A DNA stretch of 64,000 nt from Chlorokybus atmophyticus (taxonomy: Eukaryota > Plantae > Mesostigma and Chlorokybus algae): positions 310,001 through 374,000 of the forward strand of contig RHPI01002119.1 in assembly GCA_009103225.1 (NCBI GenBank), read 5' to 3'. Below are positions 1-17,756 of this stretch, in pieces (positions within the stretch are counted from its first letter, which is position 1; each line of letters begins with the position of its first letter). The notes beneath the pieces were generated by a model, which ran no database searches, was not told the origin of the DNA, and saw nothing but the letters and a program-made list of their open reading frames with translations. The position numbers and the translations under genes were made by a program.

Positions 1-2055
1 AGACAGTGTATTGAACCCAGCTTTCTTTCCTTGGGAGGTTAAAGAACAGGTACTGGCCTCTTTTGCGTTTGGTGCTGTCAGGTCACGTCTTCATGGGCAA
101 CATGGCTTGAAGTACATTTTGCACGCACGCAGTCCTATTACATGCTTGGTGTGCAGTTGAACAAAATGAAGTCGGAGATTGAGGACCTGAAAAATAACCT
201 GCAAAGCATGGTGCTTGAAGCCCTCAACTCTGTGGCCTTTACCGGCGGGCTTGGCCGCCCTTTGATTGCTCCAGAGCACGCTCTCGGCACACTGAACGCC
301 TCATTGTTAGAAGAATTCGTGCAGGTATGAACACAAGCACTCGACAGTAGGTGATTACGTTATGCATTCACTATTTGTCAGCAGTCTATGATCGCTTGTT
401 TTGGTTGAGCTCAAATCTGCAGCTAAAACGTTTGAGAGGTCATGTGTGAAAGAACGCTGTTAGTGCTGAGATAAATTTGCTGTTTTGTTGCTGCTGATGA
501 CAGGCAAACTATGCTGCGCCTCGCATTGTGGTTGCGGCATCTGGGGCTATCCATGAAGAGCTTGTGCACCTTGCAAAGCCCTACTTTGAGGGTTTGCCCA
601 AGGTTGCATCCACAACAACGCCAACCTCTCATTATGTTGGAGGAGACTGGCGCGCTGCAAAGGATAGCCCGGTATGTTTTGTCTGTTTGAATCTTCTCCA
701 CCTTGAAGTATTGTGGAGAATGTTGCGCAGTGTGCACTTGCTCGTGCTGTTGCACATGTCTGTTTTGGCATGTATCAAGCATGTGGGCTCTGGCTGACTG
801 TGCAAGTGATGTGCTCGTGTGATTTTGTGGTGACAGTTGACGCATGTTGCTGTGGGCTTCGAGTTTATTGGCGGCTGGAAAGATGTCAAGAACTCGGTGA
901 CGATGACGGTTCTTCAGGTACGTATGCTTTCTGCGAGTTGCATGTCATGGTAATGGTAATAAGACACTTGCATTGTGCACTGTGCAACCATTCCACAACG
1001 CGTTTTTTGCTGCAGATGCTGCTTGGTGGTGGTGGTGCATTCTCCTCTGGTGGTCCTGGCAAGGGCATGCACACCAGGCTATGTGAGTTTTTGATCATGA
1101 ACAAGCATGCATTTCACAGCAAGTGAATGAGCTCCTGTTGGCTAACGATGACAGCTATTGCCGGTGCAGACAAGCGCGTGTTGGTGAACTGCCCCTGGGT
1201 TGAGTCGTGCACAGCCTTCAATAGTGCGTACAACGAAACCGGCATTTTTGGCATTCACGGCACAACGGTAACTTGCTTATTTGCCCAATAACCTGTGCAC
1301 AAATGTCAGCTGTAGCTTACTCATGCAGAGGATGCTGGTTATCACAGGACGGTTCTAACATTGGAAGGCTTGTGGACATCATTGTAAAGGAGTTGCAGTC
1401 TGTTGCACAGTCTGGCTCTGGTATGTATGCTAGGACAAGTGTGAGTCGTGAGTTTGTGCGCTTTTTGCATTGTTGGCTTATCGTCATGTTCTGTTTGCAG
1501 TTACGGAAGAGGAGCTCTCCCGGGCAAAGAATGCAACCATATCATCAGTGTTAATGAACCTGGAGTCTCGGGTATGCTTCTTGGTCGTTGGTATGGTCCT
1601 TGTGATGGTTGGCTAACATTGCTTTTCTTGCCAGGTGGTCGTGTGCGAGGACATTGGCAGGCAAATTCTCACATCAGGGGACAGGTTCATGCAATTGATG
1701 TTGTAGTAGATGCTTGCATGTTCAGTGTTTTTGCGTGGTGCTGACTTGTGGATTGTGCGCAGGATTCCTCCGTCTCAATTTGTGAAGATGGTGCAGGAGC
1801 TGACATTGCAACAGGTGACAGAGGCAGCTCAAAGGTTGCTTCAGACGCCGCTCTCCCTTGCTTCAATTGGAGACAGTAAGTATTGCTCGCTTTCTTATTG
1901 GACTGTTCCACATGTGCTCAACAGCTGGAGAATTCATGCTCATGTGGCGCTTGCGGTCGTCACTGGTCACTGCCTTGCATGGTCACCAATAATTGGCTTG
2001 CTTGGCAGTTGCCAACGTCCCAAGATATGATGCTGTAGCCGCGAAGTTTAAATAG
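1..2055 (+). CDS. MPPA: Mitochondrial processing peptidase alpha subunit (5'-partial, multi-exon)
   Basis: GT-AG exons translate to DSVLNPAFFPWEVKEQ, MVLEALNSVAFTGGLGRPL, ANYAAPRIVVAASG, the glycine-rich loop QMLLGGGGAFSSGGPGKGMHTRL, AFNSAYNETGIFGI, RAKNATISSVLMNLESR, EDIGRQILT and VPRYDAVAAKFK*. Stop TAG at 2053-2055. Confidence 0.95.
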
Positions 2056-2810
2056 TCACTCCTTGTGGCGGGTGGACAACTTGCAGTCAGTGCAAGTCCA
2101 CTATGACAGCTTGCAACACTGAGGCATGGTGGACGCATTGACACTGTGTCTTGTGAGTAAGCGCACTGTTGCTTAAGAATTGTGTGGCAACGGTGTATGT
2201 TGAGCCCGCAAGCTTGCGGGCACACTGCAGAATATGTTTGAGAGTCAGCAGAGCTCTGGAGTAGGTGGCTGAGGTGTGAATCTGACCCTTTCTTAAGGAC
2301 ATCAAGTCTACAGTTTCGGAATCCGCTCCAATTTGGTTAGCTGTGGTATGTGAATTCAGCCAACAGAGTTCATGGCCTGCGCCAGCCTGGCTGCCGCATA
2401 GCATGCCGCATTGCAGTTGATGTACACTTACCTGACAGCCCTACAGTACGCTAGGCAGGATGCATGCAGCGATGGCACTATAGCTAAAGTGCAATGCCAG
2501 ACCTAATTATTCTCGCCATGAGCATCACACCTTACAACCATTGCAACAAGCATCTACACGCTTGTTGTTAAGTAGATATCCAAGCAGCAATGCTCGTATG
2601 TATAGGGTGATGAAGAGGCTCAGATTTCCAACCTCGACTTGGGGACAACAAGCAAACACATACACGACCACAGGACAGCATACACCTTTTGTGCACATGT
2701 ATGAGGTATACGCCGTAGGGCAAAGAAGCAATCCAACTCACAACAAGCAGCACCACAAGCAGCAAGCAAACTAGACACAAAGACAGGCACAAGAGAAACG
2801 CTTTATTTGT

Positions 2811-4085
2811 ACATATTCTGTGTGGTTTGCTATGCTGCCTGCTACTATGCTATGCTATTATGCTACTATGCTATGCTACTATGCCATGCTACTATGCCAT
2901 GCTGCCTACTACTACGCAGGGTTTTTGGTCAGTAGGGAGCAGAGCGGTTTTATGCCGGTACTGCCGGGTGAGACGAGGGGGAGGCGAGTGGGGTTGGTGG
3001 CCTCCGAACCCGGTCGAGATACGCGCATGCTCTTAGATGTCACGATCACCGCATGCGGCGAGCAACCGGGAGGCGCAGCGAAGGCGGCGGAGCAGGCGAA
3101 GTGGCGGAAATACCACGATCACCCCGCCACAGACACATTTCATCCCCTCGCCGCCAAGACGCACGGCACCCTGGGTCAGAGTTTTCACGACGTCATTGAC
3201 ACATGCGCTAGGAGGGCACTGGCTACACGTGACCTGCCGTTGAGCAGGCTGTCGGGCTACTTGGCTCTGTACCGGCAGCGCGTGTCATGCGCGTTGCAGC
3301 GTGCCCAGGGCATCACCATCCTGGAACGGGGGGCGGCAGTCGTAGCGTCGGTACCAGGCTGGGGCCCGGTCCAGACGGCGGCGCCAACGGCGGAAGCGGA
3401 CGCTGTGCTGGCGGCTGCGGCAGTGTAGTTGTGTAGGCGTGCTTGCATGCCGCTGGCATGCGTGTGAGTATGCTTGTGCAGTGATAGGCAGGGATGACAG
3501 TACGTAGCTTGGTGTGACGATGTTGCATACTAGTGTTATGTACATTGGTACTACTATGCTTGTTGAAGAATGCTATGCCGATTGACTGCTATGCCATGCT
3601 ACCTGTTGTTGCTGCTGCCTATGGTTGCTTGTGGAGTAGCTGAGTAGGGAGCCGTTGAGGTCTAACATTCAGACATAGTTCCGTTGCAGTTAGGCTGCCG
3701 GCAAAGTTGCTGCAAGTCATGACGACGTGGGTCTTACACAAGATGGCAGGGGCCAGCGCTTTCAGAGGCGCCGAACTGATGCAGTTGCAACAGCACAGCA
3801 CGGCAACACGCATCCCACCCGCCACCCCTTGCCTTGCTGACGCTGCTGCGTTGCTGATGTGGTTGAAGTCCTGGTCCTGCTGGCTCTAACCCCGGCACCT
3901 GTTGCTACACGGTTACTTTGCCATCCTGCCCAGCCCTGCCTCGCCCATCCCTCCGCCTCACTCACATGCACTTAGTTGGCACATAGTTAGCTTGTAAGCC
4001 GCTGGTGGAATACAAGTCCTACCCCCTGCATGTGCCTTGCTGCTGTGCCCTATGCTATGCATCCGCCACTGAGATAAGCCTATAT
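2811..4085. repeat. Direct repeat copy 1 (~620 bp, interrupted by a LINE fragment); possible Penelope pseudo-LTR
   Basis: Colinear with 10968-11595 from ACATATTCTGTGTGG to GATAAGCCTATAT once 2919-3548 and the ATGCT microsatellite expansion are removed. Confidence 0.85.
2919..3548 (+). mobile_element. 5'-truncated non-LTR retrotransposon 3' end, restriction-like endonuclease (CRE/NeSL/R2-type)
   Basis: ORF with LLDVTIT...AAKAAEQAKWRKY...FHPLAAKTHGTLG...RQRVSCALQRAQG, stop at 3428. Flanked by TACTACTACGC (2908-2918) and TACTACTATGC (3549-3559). Absent from the sister repeat copy near 11000. Confidence 0.8.
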
Positions 4086-12550: not shown

Positions 12551-13139
<589 letters not shown>

Positions 13140-13452
13140 GGTGTCATAGCTATAGCGCTTTCAAGCTTAACGCAATCCAATTAAAGTACCTACACGCATG
13201 ACATAAACTCAAGTAAGCGCTATCAAGCATCAGCTGCGCTTCACGTCGAGAGCCCTGCTGCGCTTGACATGGTCGCTAAAGGGCAGGAGGCCAAACTTAA
13301 GCTGCGCACACCACCGTGGTTGCTCTCGCTGGTAGGTCCACGCCTTGAGCCCGATGCAGTCCACAAGTATTACACCTGCCCATACATGAACACAAACCCT
13401 GACATATATACGAGTTGTAGAAAATCCCCTGTGATGTACCACACGCGCTGTC

Positions 13453-13537
13453 TGTCACGAATTGGGATAAATTGTGACAGACCTCATGGTAGTGCCTTTT
13501 ACTACCATAGCCTAGTGGTTGGGCCCCGATTATTACA
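13453..13537 (+). mobile_element. Solo LTR of TRIM family 1
   Basis: TGTCACGAATTGGGATAAATTGTGACAGACCTC...ATTACA, homologous to 4561-4649. Perfect TSD CTGTC (13448-13452 / 13538-13542). Confidence 0.88.
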
Positions 13538-14725
13538 CTGTCGGTGGTGAGCTCGTGGAAGGAGGCCCTCAACATGCCGAATGTCTTTACTGTTAGTGGG
13601 AAAAACTTGTCACCTAGCACATGGTCATTGTCTTTATGACACTTGGCCAACTCAACAAGTGAAACGCTGATGATCGCTGCACTATACACACTACGTAGGA
13701 GAGAAGAGCAGAGTAGAGACATTAACCAAGATGCGGCACAACTTAAAGTGTGCAGCAAAACTTTACCCACCTGCATGAGATTGGTACACACATCATAATA
13801 GTTAAGGTTTGTAGACGTTGCTAAAGGAAGATGTGTACTACTCATTTTTAGCATATGACTTTACAAGTCACGTATTGCGTTGCAGAGCTCATGTATTCTT
13901 TGAAAGCATATCAAAATTTCAGGTTTTTAAACTGCTACAAACCTCGCAGAATTGGGAGTATTGCAATTTACATTTAGCTGCACACCAATTGTATATAAGT
14001 GTTACACTATGTCGAGGCATAAGTGTCGATGTGATAGTTTTTAATGCAAAAAGACAAGTCCCGCATTATTAGGAGCATTGCAATTACATTTCAAGCTGAA
14101 CACCAATTATGCGTAGACATTAATCCATATCAAGTCATAAGCGTTGATGTAGTATTCCTCAATGCACAATCACAATACCTATCACATTGTGTCAAGTATA
14201 TGCTGCTACTTCACATACCCAAGTGTTACATAACATACCCCATACACATGTTGCGGTACACATTCTGACTTGAACACAATCACATAACCACCAACATTCA
14301 AGCTTCAACACGATTAAACATCCAACCCCCAACTGGTTTTGCTAATGTGTATAATTATGCAGGTAATACCTACCTCTTCTGTGAAGTGTTTGCTGACATT
14401 CCAATCCAATGTTGTGACCCCGTGTCAACTTGTGCCTGACCAACCACCAGCACTGGTAGTAACCAAGCAGACAGCAACTCAATGACAATCACATCAAAAA
14501 TGAATGCCTGCATCAACCTCCTAATACTCTTATTGGTACAAATAGCAATATGTCACTGAGCCTGGGCATCAACTGCCTACCCTTATAGGCTGCAGCAAAG
14601 AATGTTTATGTACAGCACAGAACAGCACACTTTCCCTGTACACGCTGTGGTTGTAAGGGCAACTGTTCCTGTACATATATACAACTCATTAGTTCGTGCC
14701 ACAAATGGCTGTGCCAGAGAGTGGC

Positions 14726-15678
14726 CTAGTCCATGTTGAACAGGCCATCGAACACTTGATCCAGGACAGTGTCCAGCAACTTCACGGCTCTCATGCCAGT
14801 CAGCTGAGCTGCCGAGCCCAAGTCTTCCCTCAGTTGCAGTGCAAAGTTGAGGAAACTTGCTGAGCCACCAACGACCACTGGACATGACACAATGCAAGTC
14901 AGCCACAGTATGCATGGACGTAATTGTTGGGTGCTCTTGTGTAGCTGTAAGGGAAGCACATGTATACCTGGCAGTAAGGCTATGAACGTCAGCAGCTGCC
15001 AATTCACTTCAGAAAACACGCCATCACCAGTCAGCATCTCCATGACAAGAGCTGCAGTAAACCCTAGCTGCAACGAGGAAGGGCCTGTCAGGAGAAATGA
15101 ACAGCACACAAAGCTACTGAAGCAGACGACCAACAATTACAAATATACACATGCAAAACTTACCATGGCTGCTCGTCCAGCGATGCTTTCAAAGGTCTTA
15201 ATGGCTAGCCGCGCCTGCGCATCGGCGGCAAGTAACAGCACAAGGTGGCGGCCATCGGGAGTCCGTGGAGCTGGGAGAGCCAAGAGGGAGTTGCTGTAGT
15301 CCTGAACTGTGGGCTGAACAGGAAGGGGTCCGTGTGCAAACAACTCCAATGAACACAATCTAACAGCAAAAGATAAATCTCAGGTTGTAGCTTGGTTTGA
15401 CTTTTAACCGCAACAATTCCGGATATACACTGTGGAGTTCTAAAATACAACAGAGTGCACAACGAGCGTGTCAACGACTTGAGATGCAATCAGTATGCAT
15501 ACCTTGGCACTGGGGAGCCAGAGCGATCGTAGCGTTCAATCTGAGGAACAAGTGTAGGCCTGAGGATTGCTGTAGGTGGACGCCTTGGTGAGGGAGCCGT
15601 GCGGTTAGCAACTCTTGCAGAGCGCTGGTTAAGCGGCAGGGAGACCCCTAGCCACGGGCTGGCCAACAGCTTCGCCAT
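14726..15678 (-). CDS. SEP2: Stress-enhanced protein 2 (two-helix LHC-like protein)
   Basis: Transit-peptide-like exon MAKLLASPW..., then DYSNSLLALP, the LHC motif KTFESIAGRAAM/LGFTAALVMEMLTGDGVF, and C-terminal LDTVLDQVFDGLF as in plant SEP2. The junction between exons 1 and 2 needs a small extra exon or an alternative site to keep frame (unresolved). Confidence 0.85.
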
Positions 15679-15704
15679 TACTAACTGTAGTAGAATCCTC
15701 TCTG

Positions 15705-16048
15705 TCACACACGCGTCTCACTCTTGCGCTTCCCTGAACCTATGATCAAGCCGGTGTCTTGCGGGTCTGGCCTGGGGGTAACCTTGTCCACGTACACGAC
15801 CTTAGACTTGGCCTTTTCCTGCAGGAAGACAACAGGGTCGGCACACAGTAACTCAGAACACGTAATTCACTGTGGGTTGCTTCAAACTCTAACCCTCCAC
15901 CCACCAGCAGCTCTTTGCGCCGCCTCTCCTCCGGCTTCACCCACAAATAATAGGCAGCAACGCCCGCAGCAACCCAAGCACCAACGCTCTTACGCCCGCG
16001 CACTCCAAACACGTCCTTCAGGCTGTCTATACGCGCTCCCCAGCTCAT
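15705..16048 (-). CDS. Small (85 aa) single-TM conserved green-lineage protein, 2 exons
   Basis: Exon 16048-15905 (MSWGARIDSLKDVFGVRGRKSVGAWVAAGVAAYYLWVKPEERRRKELL), phase-0 GT-AG intron 15904-15819, exon 15818-15705 (EKAKSKVVYVDKVTPRPDPQDTGLIIGSGKRKSETRV*). Resembles, from memory, a plant family with W..AG..AY.LW.KP and P.PDPQ.TGLI.G motifs. Confidence 0.82.
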
Positions 16049-17132
16049 ACGCTCCTCAACCAGTTTACCGTCTCCTAGCACCACGCCTTATGCCGCCGCC
16101 CACGCCTGCAACAATGCTGCTCGCCTTCCCAATTGAACCGTCACATGGTACAATGAACTGAAGAAGGCGCAGCTAATACTTAAAGCAACCAGCTTTTTAG
16201 CCGATATCGATGGCTTGTGCTGTGGTACCTGGGCAAAACAGAGGGATGTCGAGAAGACAGCTGATGTCAAGTTGTGACGGGGAGTGGCGGGAAGCGCGCA
16301 AAAGGTAATCTAACGAATATGATGCGAGCAGACTCATAAGCGTTGGGCGTATCGGACGGTGCAGAACTCTGTAGTTTGTGCAATCGCTTTGATACGGCTT
16401 TCGGGCACTCTGTGTCGTGGCTGCGGCTTGCCGCAAGCTGTCAGCCACCCATGCCGACGTGGAAGCCGCCGGCGTAACAGCCCCTAACCGCCCGACGCGG
16501 GATAACTTCAACCGTCAGATTTATTTTGATCTGAAGGGTGTGAAGCTCTTACAATGGAGGGTGTCAATGGTGTCCACGGCTGGGAGACGTAAGGGGGCAA
16601 CAGTTGGCGGGCCCAAAAAGAAGTGCAAGGAAAAACAAAGAGCAGGTGAAAGGCAGGACGCTTTCAGCGGTTCAGTGTGCTGACTGCTGACACATCGAAC
16701 CGTCGGATCGCACGGCCAATGGGCTGTGATAGTGCCACGCAGGTGCGGCACAGTCAGACCGACTCGCGCGTAATGTGCATGAATTTTTCCACACTGTCCA
16801 GGGGCAGCAGCACAACGGGCGGGTGTCGCAGCAGCCACGTAAGCCTACGTTGCGCTGTGTACAAGCGCTGCGCCGCTGGGAGCTCAGCGCAGGCTTGTCA
16901 CAAGCCGCTTGTGTGATGCAGCTATCAAGTGTACCTTGACCCCCCCCCCCTCCCCCTGGGGAATTGCCCCATGGGGCCGGTATTCTTAGGAAGGCTGGTA
17001 GGAGTTGCAAGCAGGGTTTGCTGCAACGCGGCGCGCCCACGTCGTTAGTCGCGGCGCCGCCAGATGACTGTGTGCATCGCGCGGCGGCATGTACCATCGC
17101 TGTTCGATCTAGGTGATCGAATGGCCTGATGA

Positions 17133-17206
17133 CAGTCGACCGCAATGATTCTGGCGGTCGACTGCAAGTCGACCGCCAGAATCATTGCGGTCGACTGCAA
17201 GTCGAC
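17133..17206. repeat. Perfect ~30-bp inverted repeat built from GTCGAC-bounded units
   Basis: Core GTCGACCGCAATGATTCTGGCGGTCGAC-TGCAA-GTCGACCGCCAGAATCATTGCGGTCGAC; five GTCGAC sites at 17135, 17157, 17168, 17190 and 17201. Confidence 0.9.
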
Positions 17207-17756
17207 CGGCTTCATGTCACAATGCGACCGCTATTACCTGCAAACTTGTAATAAACAAGCCGTTTTGCTCCGGTTAATCATGAAACCGAGGGACAAAAAC
17301 TCCCCTCTTTATACCAATGGCTCACGTGCACTGGATGCGCATGAGCCGTAAAAGGTTTGATTATAGTAATTTTAATCAACATTATTGTGATTTTATTACT
17401 TTATTCTTATTATTATTATAAACATAATGGGCTATGTGCGGCACATATGCGCCTCAACAAATAGCCCTGTATAGCGTAATTGTCACGACTAGAAATTGTA
17501 AAATCTTAGTTGTTTCATTAAACAAGAATAATATTCTTTTGGTAATTGAACGTAATCTTCAACACTTTCAGCTCTACTTAACCTTGCACACATGCTTTAG
17601 ATATTTTGAGCTTGCCATAAACGCAAGTTTGAACTTGATTGCATTATGAGGCCACGGCCGAGGGCATTTTCCAACATACGAGATTTCAACGTTATTACTA
17701 TTTTACGATGTTTGATGTTCCCGATCCTTAACTTGGAGGCCATCCGTATGCCCGCG

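Follow-up and report, generated by a model that had tools for sequence, protein, structure and literature searches.

Does the locus of stress enhanced protein 2 (SEP2) in the alga Chlorokybus atmophyticus make two separate proteins from one nuclear mRNA? The question is raised by a stretch of 64,000 nucleotides (nt) from assembly GCA_009103225.1 (contig RHPI01002119.1, positions 310,001 to 374,000; hereafter the window), where a small open reading frame (ORF1) directly precedes the SEP2 reading frame (ORF2) on the minus strand. An earlier note, made from the sequence alone, had proposed that both proteins come from one mRNA by leaky scanning. We favour this reading and give a probability of about 70% to a single bicistronic mRNA of the Chlorokybus lineage from which both proteins are produced by leaky scanning. 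We infer from the sequence that single molecules would carry both ORFs, that both would be translated, and that leaky scanning would be the route to the second.

ORF1 consists of two exons (ATG 16048-16046, stop TGA 15707-15705), which splice to 258 nt and encode 85 amino acids. ORF2 consists of four exons and encodes 207 amino acids, with its ATG at 15678. The positions that the earlier note gave for the ORF1 stop and the SEP2 ATG were borne out, so that 26 nt (15704-15679) separate the two ORFs, whose reading frames differ (offset 2). Its description of the two start contexts also agrees with ours. Under the general eukaryotic Kozak rule, the ORF1 start GAGCGTatgA is weak, with C at -3 and A at +4, and the SEP2 start TTAGTAatgG is strong, with G at both positions.

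The path between the two starts contains no ATG in any frame. This had been claimed for spliced ORF1 and the spacer, and it holds even in unspliced DNA. An ATG-free path of 281 nt was obtained in 0.5% of composition shuffles, with a probability of 0.2% under a Poisson model based on the ATG frequency of the window, and in 1.1% of random 281-nt segments of the window. A protein-aware null gave about 1-3%, combining the chance of a Met-free protein of 84 residues (12-18%) with the chance of no out-of-frame ATG under synonymous resampling (8-18%). For comparison, the SEP2 ORF contains 9 further ATGs in 621 nt. The depletion of ATGs before SEP2 is therefore real, and only moderately significant for a single locus. 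Upstream of ORF1, ATGs are present at 16337 and 16146. The earlier note had warned that an ATG near 16338 would complicate the model if transcribed; the one at 16337 is indeed present, but it lies outside all RNA contigs, as does that at 16146.

RNA evidence came from the Logan contigs of four runs, mapped to 13200-17700. A contig of 1101 nt from run X1 (study P1, 2013) extends from 14508 to 16023, and one of 1100 nt from run X2 (study P2, 2021) extends from 14535 to 16048. In both, all four introns (one in ORF1, three in SEP2) are spliced at exactly the modelled sites, which indicates that the contigs derive from spliced RNA. The exon at 15503-15817, in which ORF1 ends, the spacer lies and SEP2 starts, is unbroken in three contigs (1101, 1100 and 1047 nt) that come from three runs and two studies, and no break or branch occurs between the ORFs in the contigs of these three runs. 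In the four runs, which have high contig depth, the contigs neither include ORF1 intron sequence nor extend beyond 16091 on the upstream side. The earlier note had also placed an intron in the 5′ untranslated region (UTR) at about 16237-16109. A GT (16228-16227) and an AG (16107-16106) exist a few bases from these positions, but no joint or upstream exon was found in the four runs, and this intron was rejected for want of RNA support. One base difference touches the SEP2 start: at position 15680 (+ strand) run X2 has T and the window has A, which is -2 of the start, and the G at -3 is retained. A second X1 record (128 nt) covers 15994-16091 and then repeats 15994-16023. It resembles a circular 98-nt unitig, which requires reads that connect 16091 with 15994. 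Such a joint might have arisen as an artefact of template switching where the RNA truly begins.

Several observations suggest that ORF1 is a real, conserved small-protein gene, as judged by sequence comparison. A scan of metagenome contigs revealed one homologue, on contig L009 (JAABUO010041784.1, 63% G+C), which was modelled as four GT..AG exons at 1722-2310 (+) encoding 91 amino acids. The two proteins share 50% identity over a block ending in YYLWVKPE (alignment A2), followed by a second collinear block, DPQD(T/N)GL. Moreover, the intron after the first block has the same aligned position and the same GTGGGT donor in L009 and in Chlorokybus. The start and composition of the L009 copy are opposite to those of the Chlorokybus copy, with a purine at -3 and 4 further ATGs in 276 nt. 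An ATG-free ORF1 in Chlorokybus against an ATG-containing copy in L009 is what selection for leaky scanning predicts. No SEP2 was found beside the homologue when all SEP2-family proteins were compared with L009 by tblastn; its neighbour, 748 nt away, is a convergent flavin amine oxidase gene (3058-3642, -). An ATG 8 nt past the stop of the homologue opens a 96-codon ORF that has no Pfam match.

The ORF1 product itself has few recognizable relatives. A word search with exon 1 found no protein in a database that includes the Chlorokybus proteome, and ORF1 therefore appears to be unannotated. Pfam searches, which were run exon by exon for both ORFs, gave nothing above threshold for either, and PDB searches with ORF1 exon 1 and with the two-sequence profile A2 returned only chance-level matches. 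The same weak match to NCE101 (PF11654), a small single-pass fungal protein, occurs in ORF1 and in the L009 homologue at profile positions 13-31, spanning the hydrophobic segment and the YY-aromatic block in each. The scores are 13.4 bits for ORF1 exon 1 and 12.9 bits for L009 (E 0.067 and 0.092) against a cut-off of 24 bits, and the match may serve as a lead, with membership not established. The description of ORF1 as a membrane protein in the earlier note depends on one segment of 16 residues whose hydrophobicity is no more than moderate, with a Kyte-Doolittle mean of 0.95 for the best 19 residues and of about 1.5, by hand tally, for the 16-residue core. The language-model recognition score of ORF1 (2743) is protein-like, and its neighbours in the model are small single-pass proteins, mostly mitochondrial (DUF4500, DAPIT, COX6C), which we treat as leads only. 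ORF1 has no obvious transit peptide, whereas SEP2 has a long disordered N-terminus, which hints at different destinations for the two proteins.

The identity of ORF2 as a SEP2 (LIL5)-type two-helix protein belonging to the light-harvesting complex (LHC)-like group, for which the earlier note had used the name SEP2, is supported by the names of its relatives, its Atlas cluster, its LHC motif and its two-helix architecture. After splicing, ORF2 encodes exactly the protein P0001 (eukprot entry jgi/Chlat1/7038/Chrsp56S06666). Word searches with ORF2 returned only this protein, and an exact look-up of P0001 on contigs found none on record. An exhaustive phmmer search gave 27 matches; those over residues 55-204 bear the names ‘Stress enhanced protein 2’ (from Sphagnum and Riccia) and ‘stress enhanced protein’ (from Klebsormidium). 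The SEP2 name was assigned from these closest named relatives, as opposed to ELIP, OHP, LIL3 and PsbS, and not from a tree. In the Atlas, the cluster closest to ORF2 is ‘stress enhanced protein 2’ (0.93), which has no common Pfam family. Therefore, the score of ORF2 against Chloroa_b-bind (PF00504; 20.9 bits, E 5.6e-4, just under the cut-off of 22.3 bits) shows how far the Pfam model can reach among SEP2-type proteins and is not a criterion for the family.

In a PDB search, residues 112-148 of ORF2 matched both LHC-motif helices of PsbS (E 1.2e-7), Lhca4 and HliD. ORF2 contains a single LHC motif of the E-x-x-x-G-R-x-A-M-x-G-F type, in which E116, G120, R121 and M124 are invariant in the alignment of relatives (A1). 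Identity to these relatives is 27-32%, and conservation in A1 extends to PR-x-C-(T/S)-L across the exon 1/2 junction and to the C-terminal helix with D-x-x-x-D...G-x-F. An AlphaFold model built on A1 places helices at 96-137, 147-175 and 182-204 after a disordered N-terminus, with model confidence (pLDDT) of 78-85 over residues 101-170. According to the model and the PDB motif search, the second helix lacks an LHC motif and there is no third LHC helix. This arrangement, one LHC-motif helix followed by a motif-free helix, resembles that of Arabidopsis SEP2/LIL5, and the N-terminus of ORF2 is transit-peptide-like. A review describes SEP2 as induced by high light and poorly studied even in Arabidopsis (PMC9916820; Heddad and Adamska 2000 cited there). 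The Klebsormidium nitens SEP model GAQ87685.1 (163 aa; L004 3797-4959) appears to be N-terminally truncated; an in-frame ATG at L004 3797 gives an N-terminus that matches P0031, the 229-aa transcript product of K. subtile.

The two-ORF layout has been kept in a diverged Chlorokybus lineage. A contig of 1047 nt from run X4, which carries an identical organism label, is about 10% diverged and has the same two-ORF architecture. Neither ORF contains an indel: every one lies in the spacer, with 5 inserted bases, or in the 3′ UTR. Two Leu codons at the ORF1 exon junction are changed synonymously; among the differences listed (40 of 99), none lies inside ORF1. Chlorokybus comprises cryptic species with a divergence of up to about 76 Ma (PMC8611356), and the divergence of X4 fits such a species.

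Beyond Chlorokybus, the pairing was not conserved among the loci examined. No ORF1-like sequence was found upstream of SEP2 in the genomes of Klebsormidium nitens and Edaphochlamys debaryana or in Logan contigs L001, L002/L003 and L008, and a comparison of eight SEP2-orthologue loci with the ORF1 exons by tblastn gave no match. The SEP2 transcript contigs of L001, L002/L003 and L008 begin with ATG-free leaders of 191, 94/61 and 104 nt, respectively. The other SEP2 genes examined thus differ from that of Chlorokybus, which alone has an upstream cistron. Adjacency of orthologues, which the earlier note had suggested as a check, was therefore found only within Chlorokybus. Its proposed functional link between the two proteins is not supported, as SEP2 orthologues occur without ORF1 and the one ORF1 homologue found elsewhere stands alone. 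The note had also implied a chlorophyte host, but Chlorokybus is a streptophyte alga. Two genes that are unlinked elsewhere thus seem to have come to lie side by side in this lineage, and ORF1 would then have been purged of AUGs. In the Logan contigs L006 (2-2390) and L007 (2-1451), a SEP2-like ORF (P0026, 208 aa) follows a same-strand ORF for a leucine-rich repeat (LRR) protein after 262 nt. This spacer contains ATGs and hence does not offer a leaky-scanning layout; the two are probably neighbouring genes in a compact genome.

In the mechanism that we propose, the locus would yield one capped, spliced nuclear mRNA of about 1.15 kb that encodes two separate proteins. The scanning 43S complex would first meet the weak AUG of ORF1, with its pyrimidine at -3 and A at +4, and a fraction of complexes would initiate there to produce the 85-residue protein with a single hydrophobic helix. 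The remaining complexes would continue scanning over 284 nt without a further AUG and initiate at the strong AUG of SEP2, whose product would be a chloroplast protein of the two-helix LHC-like type, carrying a transit peptide at its N-terminus. How much of each protein is made relative to the other would depend on how strong the start context of ORF1 is. Additionally, an interplay with nonsense-mediated decay (NMD) is possible, as for CDC26-TTM3, since three exon junctions follow the ORF1 stop.

The contigs might instead merge two overlapping monocistronic transcripts during assembly, with SEP2 RNA starting in or near ORF1 exon 2 and ORF1 RNA running on to the poly(A) site of SEP2 or to a cryptic one. 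Contigs cannot separate such RNAs, and SEP2 orthologues elsewhere are monocistronic, with ATG-free leaders of 61-191 nt. However, the contigs are unbroken and unbranched between the ORFs in three runs, and an mRNA for ORF1 only would need a poly(A) site within SEP2, where no contig ends. ORF1 exon 1, which would lie outside such a SEP2 RNA, is also ATG-free, and the L009 homologue is not. We therefore consider overlapping transcripts unlikely. The main role of ORF1 might also be regulatory: as a long upstream ORF it would throttle SEP2 translation or trigger NMD, and its peptide would have no function of its own. It is short, apparently unannotated and without a family match above threshold, and its stop before three exon junctions reproduces the NMD-triggering layout described for CDC26-TTM3 (PMC11892635). 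Against this stand the separate four-exon homologue with the same intron position, the protein-like language-model score, and the lack of indels in ORF1 of X4 despite indels in the spacer and 3′ UTR. A purely regulatory ORF1 is, in our judgement, distinctly unlikely.

Finally, the mRNA could be bicistronic and SEP2 be reached by termination and reinitiation or another non-scanning route. Reinitiation and leaky scanning are indistinguishable from sequence, and the spacer is short and looks unstructured. Reinitiation efficiency falls steeply for upstream ORFs longer than about 30 codons and for short intercistronic distances, so that 85 codons and a 26-nt gap are unfavourable. Moreover, reinitiation would select neither against AUGs in ORF1 nor for a weak context, and both features are present. 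Mutational tests in A. protothecoides favour leaky scanning for the class of bicistrons (PMC11892635), and we regard a non-scanning route as very unlikely here. An internal ribosome entry site was rejected, as a spacer of 26 nt is too short for one. Readthrough or a fusion protein was likewise rejected, given frames offset by 2 and no alternative joint in the contigs.

Several points weigh against one bicistronic mRNA translated by leaky scanning, the reading that we prefer. The case is built from sequence and RNA contigs, and the assignment of all four runs to RNA is a guess, although the removal of introns favours it. The claim of one mRNA for both ORFs finds support in contigs that are continuous in three runs, but De Bruijn contigs are no proof of single molecules and overlapping transcripts would assemble alike. 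The start contexts were judged by a Kozak rule for eukaryotes in general and not by one drawn from Chlorokybus genes. The protein-aware P value for ATG depletion is only about 0.01-0.03, at a locus that was picked by a reader seeking that signature. Additionally, the X4 contig ends 33 nt short of the ORF1 ATG, which leaves conservation of the ORF1 start and its context outside its coverage.

Table 1. Features of the ORF1-SEP2 locus, in window coordinates and in the order of transcription.
Feature	Coordinates	Strand	Basis and remarks
Minimal 5′ UTR, 43 nt, ATG-free	16049..16091	-	16091 is the most upstream base in any RNA contig (X1 record 2)
ORF1 exon 1, 48 codons; hydrophobic segment and YYLWVKPE block	15905..16048	-	Sequence, RNA contigs, homologue alignment
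ORF1 intron, 86 nt, GT..AG, donor GTGGGT	15819..15904	-	Joint in X1 and X2 contigs; position kept in L009 homologue
ORF1 exon 2, 37 codons and TGA; DPQD(T/N)GL block common with L009	15705..15818	-	Sequence, RNA contigs
Inter-ORF spacer, 26 nt, no ATG	15679..15704	-	Sequence; diverged X4 contig has 5 inserted bases here
SEP2 exon 1; encodes transit-peptide-like N-terminus	15503..15678	-	Sequence, RNA contigs
SEP2 exon 2; first half of LHC-motif helix	15164..15359	-	Joint 15359/15503 in X1 and X2; motifs in alignment A1
SEP2 exon 3; second half of LHC-motif helix and start of second helix	14968..15067	-	Joints in all four runs
SEP2 exon 4, stop TAG 14728-14726; second helix and C-terminal D-x-x-x-D-x-x-x-x-G-x-F helix	14726..14877	-	Contigs, alignment, model
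3′ UTR as covered by contigs	14508..14725	-	AATAAG hexamer at 14534-14529, 21 nt before X1 contig end

The AATAAG hexamer in the 3′ UTR may act as a poly(A) signal. SEP2 intron 3 (14878-14967) is 90 nt long, in frame and free of stops, and a mechanically called ORF (14726..15136) reads through it. Its retention would add 30 residues between both helices without truncation; no contig of this kind occurs in the four runs. Two repeats flank the locus. A perfect (TC)292 microsatellite of 584 bp (12554-13137) lies about 1.4 kb past its 3′ end, and a 33-nt tandem repeat of 2.3 copies (17134-17208) lies about 1 kb upstream.

Nuclear bicistronic mRNAs translated by leaky scanning are known from green algae (Gallaher 2021 PMC7896298; Duenas 2025 PMC11892635), and mutational tests in A. 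protothecoides support this mechanism for the class (PMC11892635). The Chlorokybus locus resembles the published bicistrons in its small ORF1 before a larger same-strand ORF2 in a different frame, its short leader, its weak ORF1 and strong ORF2 Kozak contexts, the depletion of AUGs before ORF2, and an ORF1 that encodes a ‘pioneer’ small protein without a known family. ORF1 measures 258 nt, where the published medians are 291-357 nt; the two ORFs lie 26 nt apart, compared with a median of 40 nt in A. protothecoides; and the leader is at least 43 nt, compared with medians of 54-83 nt (PMC11892635). The two cases differ in the type of transcript evidence, which consists of full-length Iso-Seq reads in the published class and of spliced contigs here. 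They differ also in the host, which is a streptophyte here, whereas the curated sets were drawn from the chlorophytes C. reinhardtii, C. zofingiensis, A. protothecoides and their relatives. CDC26-TTM3 of land plants and green algae is also bicistronic in Streptophyta, with the stop of a short ORF1 before exon junctions; it involves other genes and is conserved among plants and algae (PMC11892635), whereas we found ORF1-SEP2 only in Chlorokybus lineages.

The searched text of the Duenas 2025 supplements contains no SEP2, LIL, LHC, ELIP or chlorophyll locus (PMC11892635), and ORF1-SEP2 is therefore absent from the loci of that study as far as the text shows. A literature text search found nothing published on nuclear bicistrons in streptophyte algae, Chlorokybus included. 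We regard the locus as a well-supported further example of a known phenomenon, in a lineage without a published case.

We tentatively suggest that leaky-scanning bicistrons extend beyond the chlorophytes and that evolution makes active use of them among the earliest-branching streptophytes. A conserved small single-helix gene, which stands alone in another alga, may have been captured upstream of SEP2, purged of AUGs and given a weak start, although we hold this broader account to be somewhat less probable than not. In a stronger version, the ORF1 protein would work with SEP2 and the shared mRNA would fix their ratio. The Chlorokybus gene set gains an 85-residue gene that appears to be unannotated, and the locus provides a natural contrast for the origin of bicistrons, between a copy that is ATG-free, with a weak start and a second cistron, and one that contains ATGs, has a strong start and stands alone. 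On the broader account, the locus would record the birth of a bicistron. A leaky-scanning bicistron in Chlorokybus would carry this class into a streptophyte alga, the sister of all others in the land-plant lineage, and would bear on whether the bicistronic layout is ancestral to green plants.

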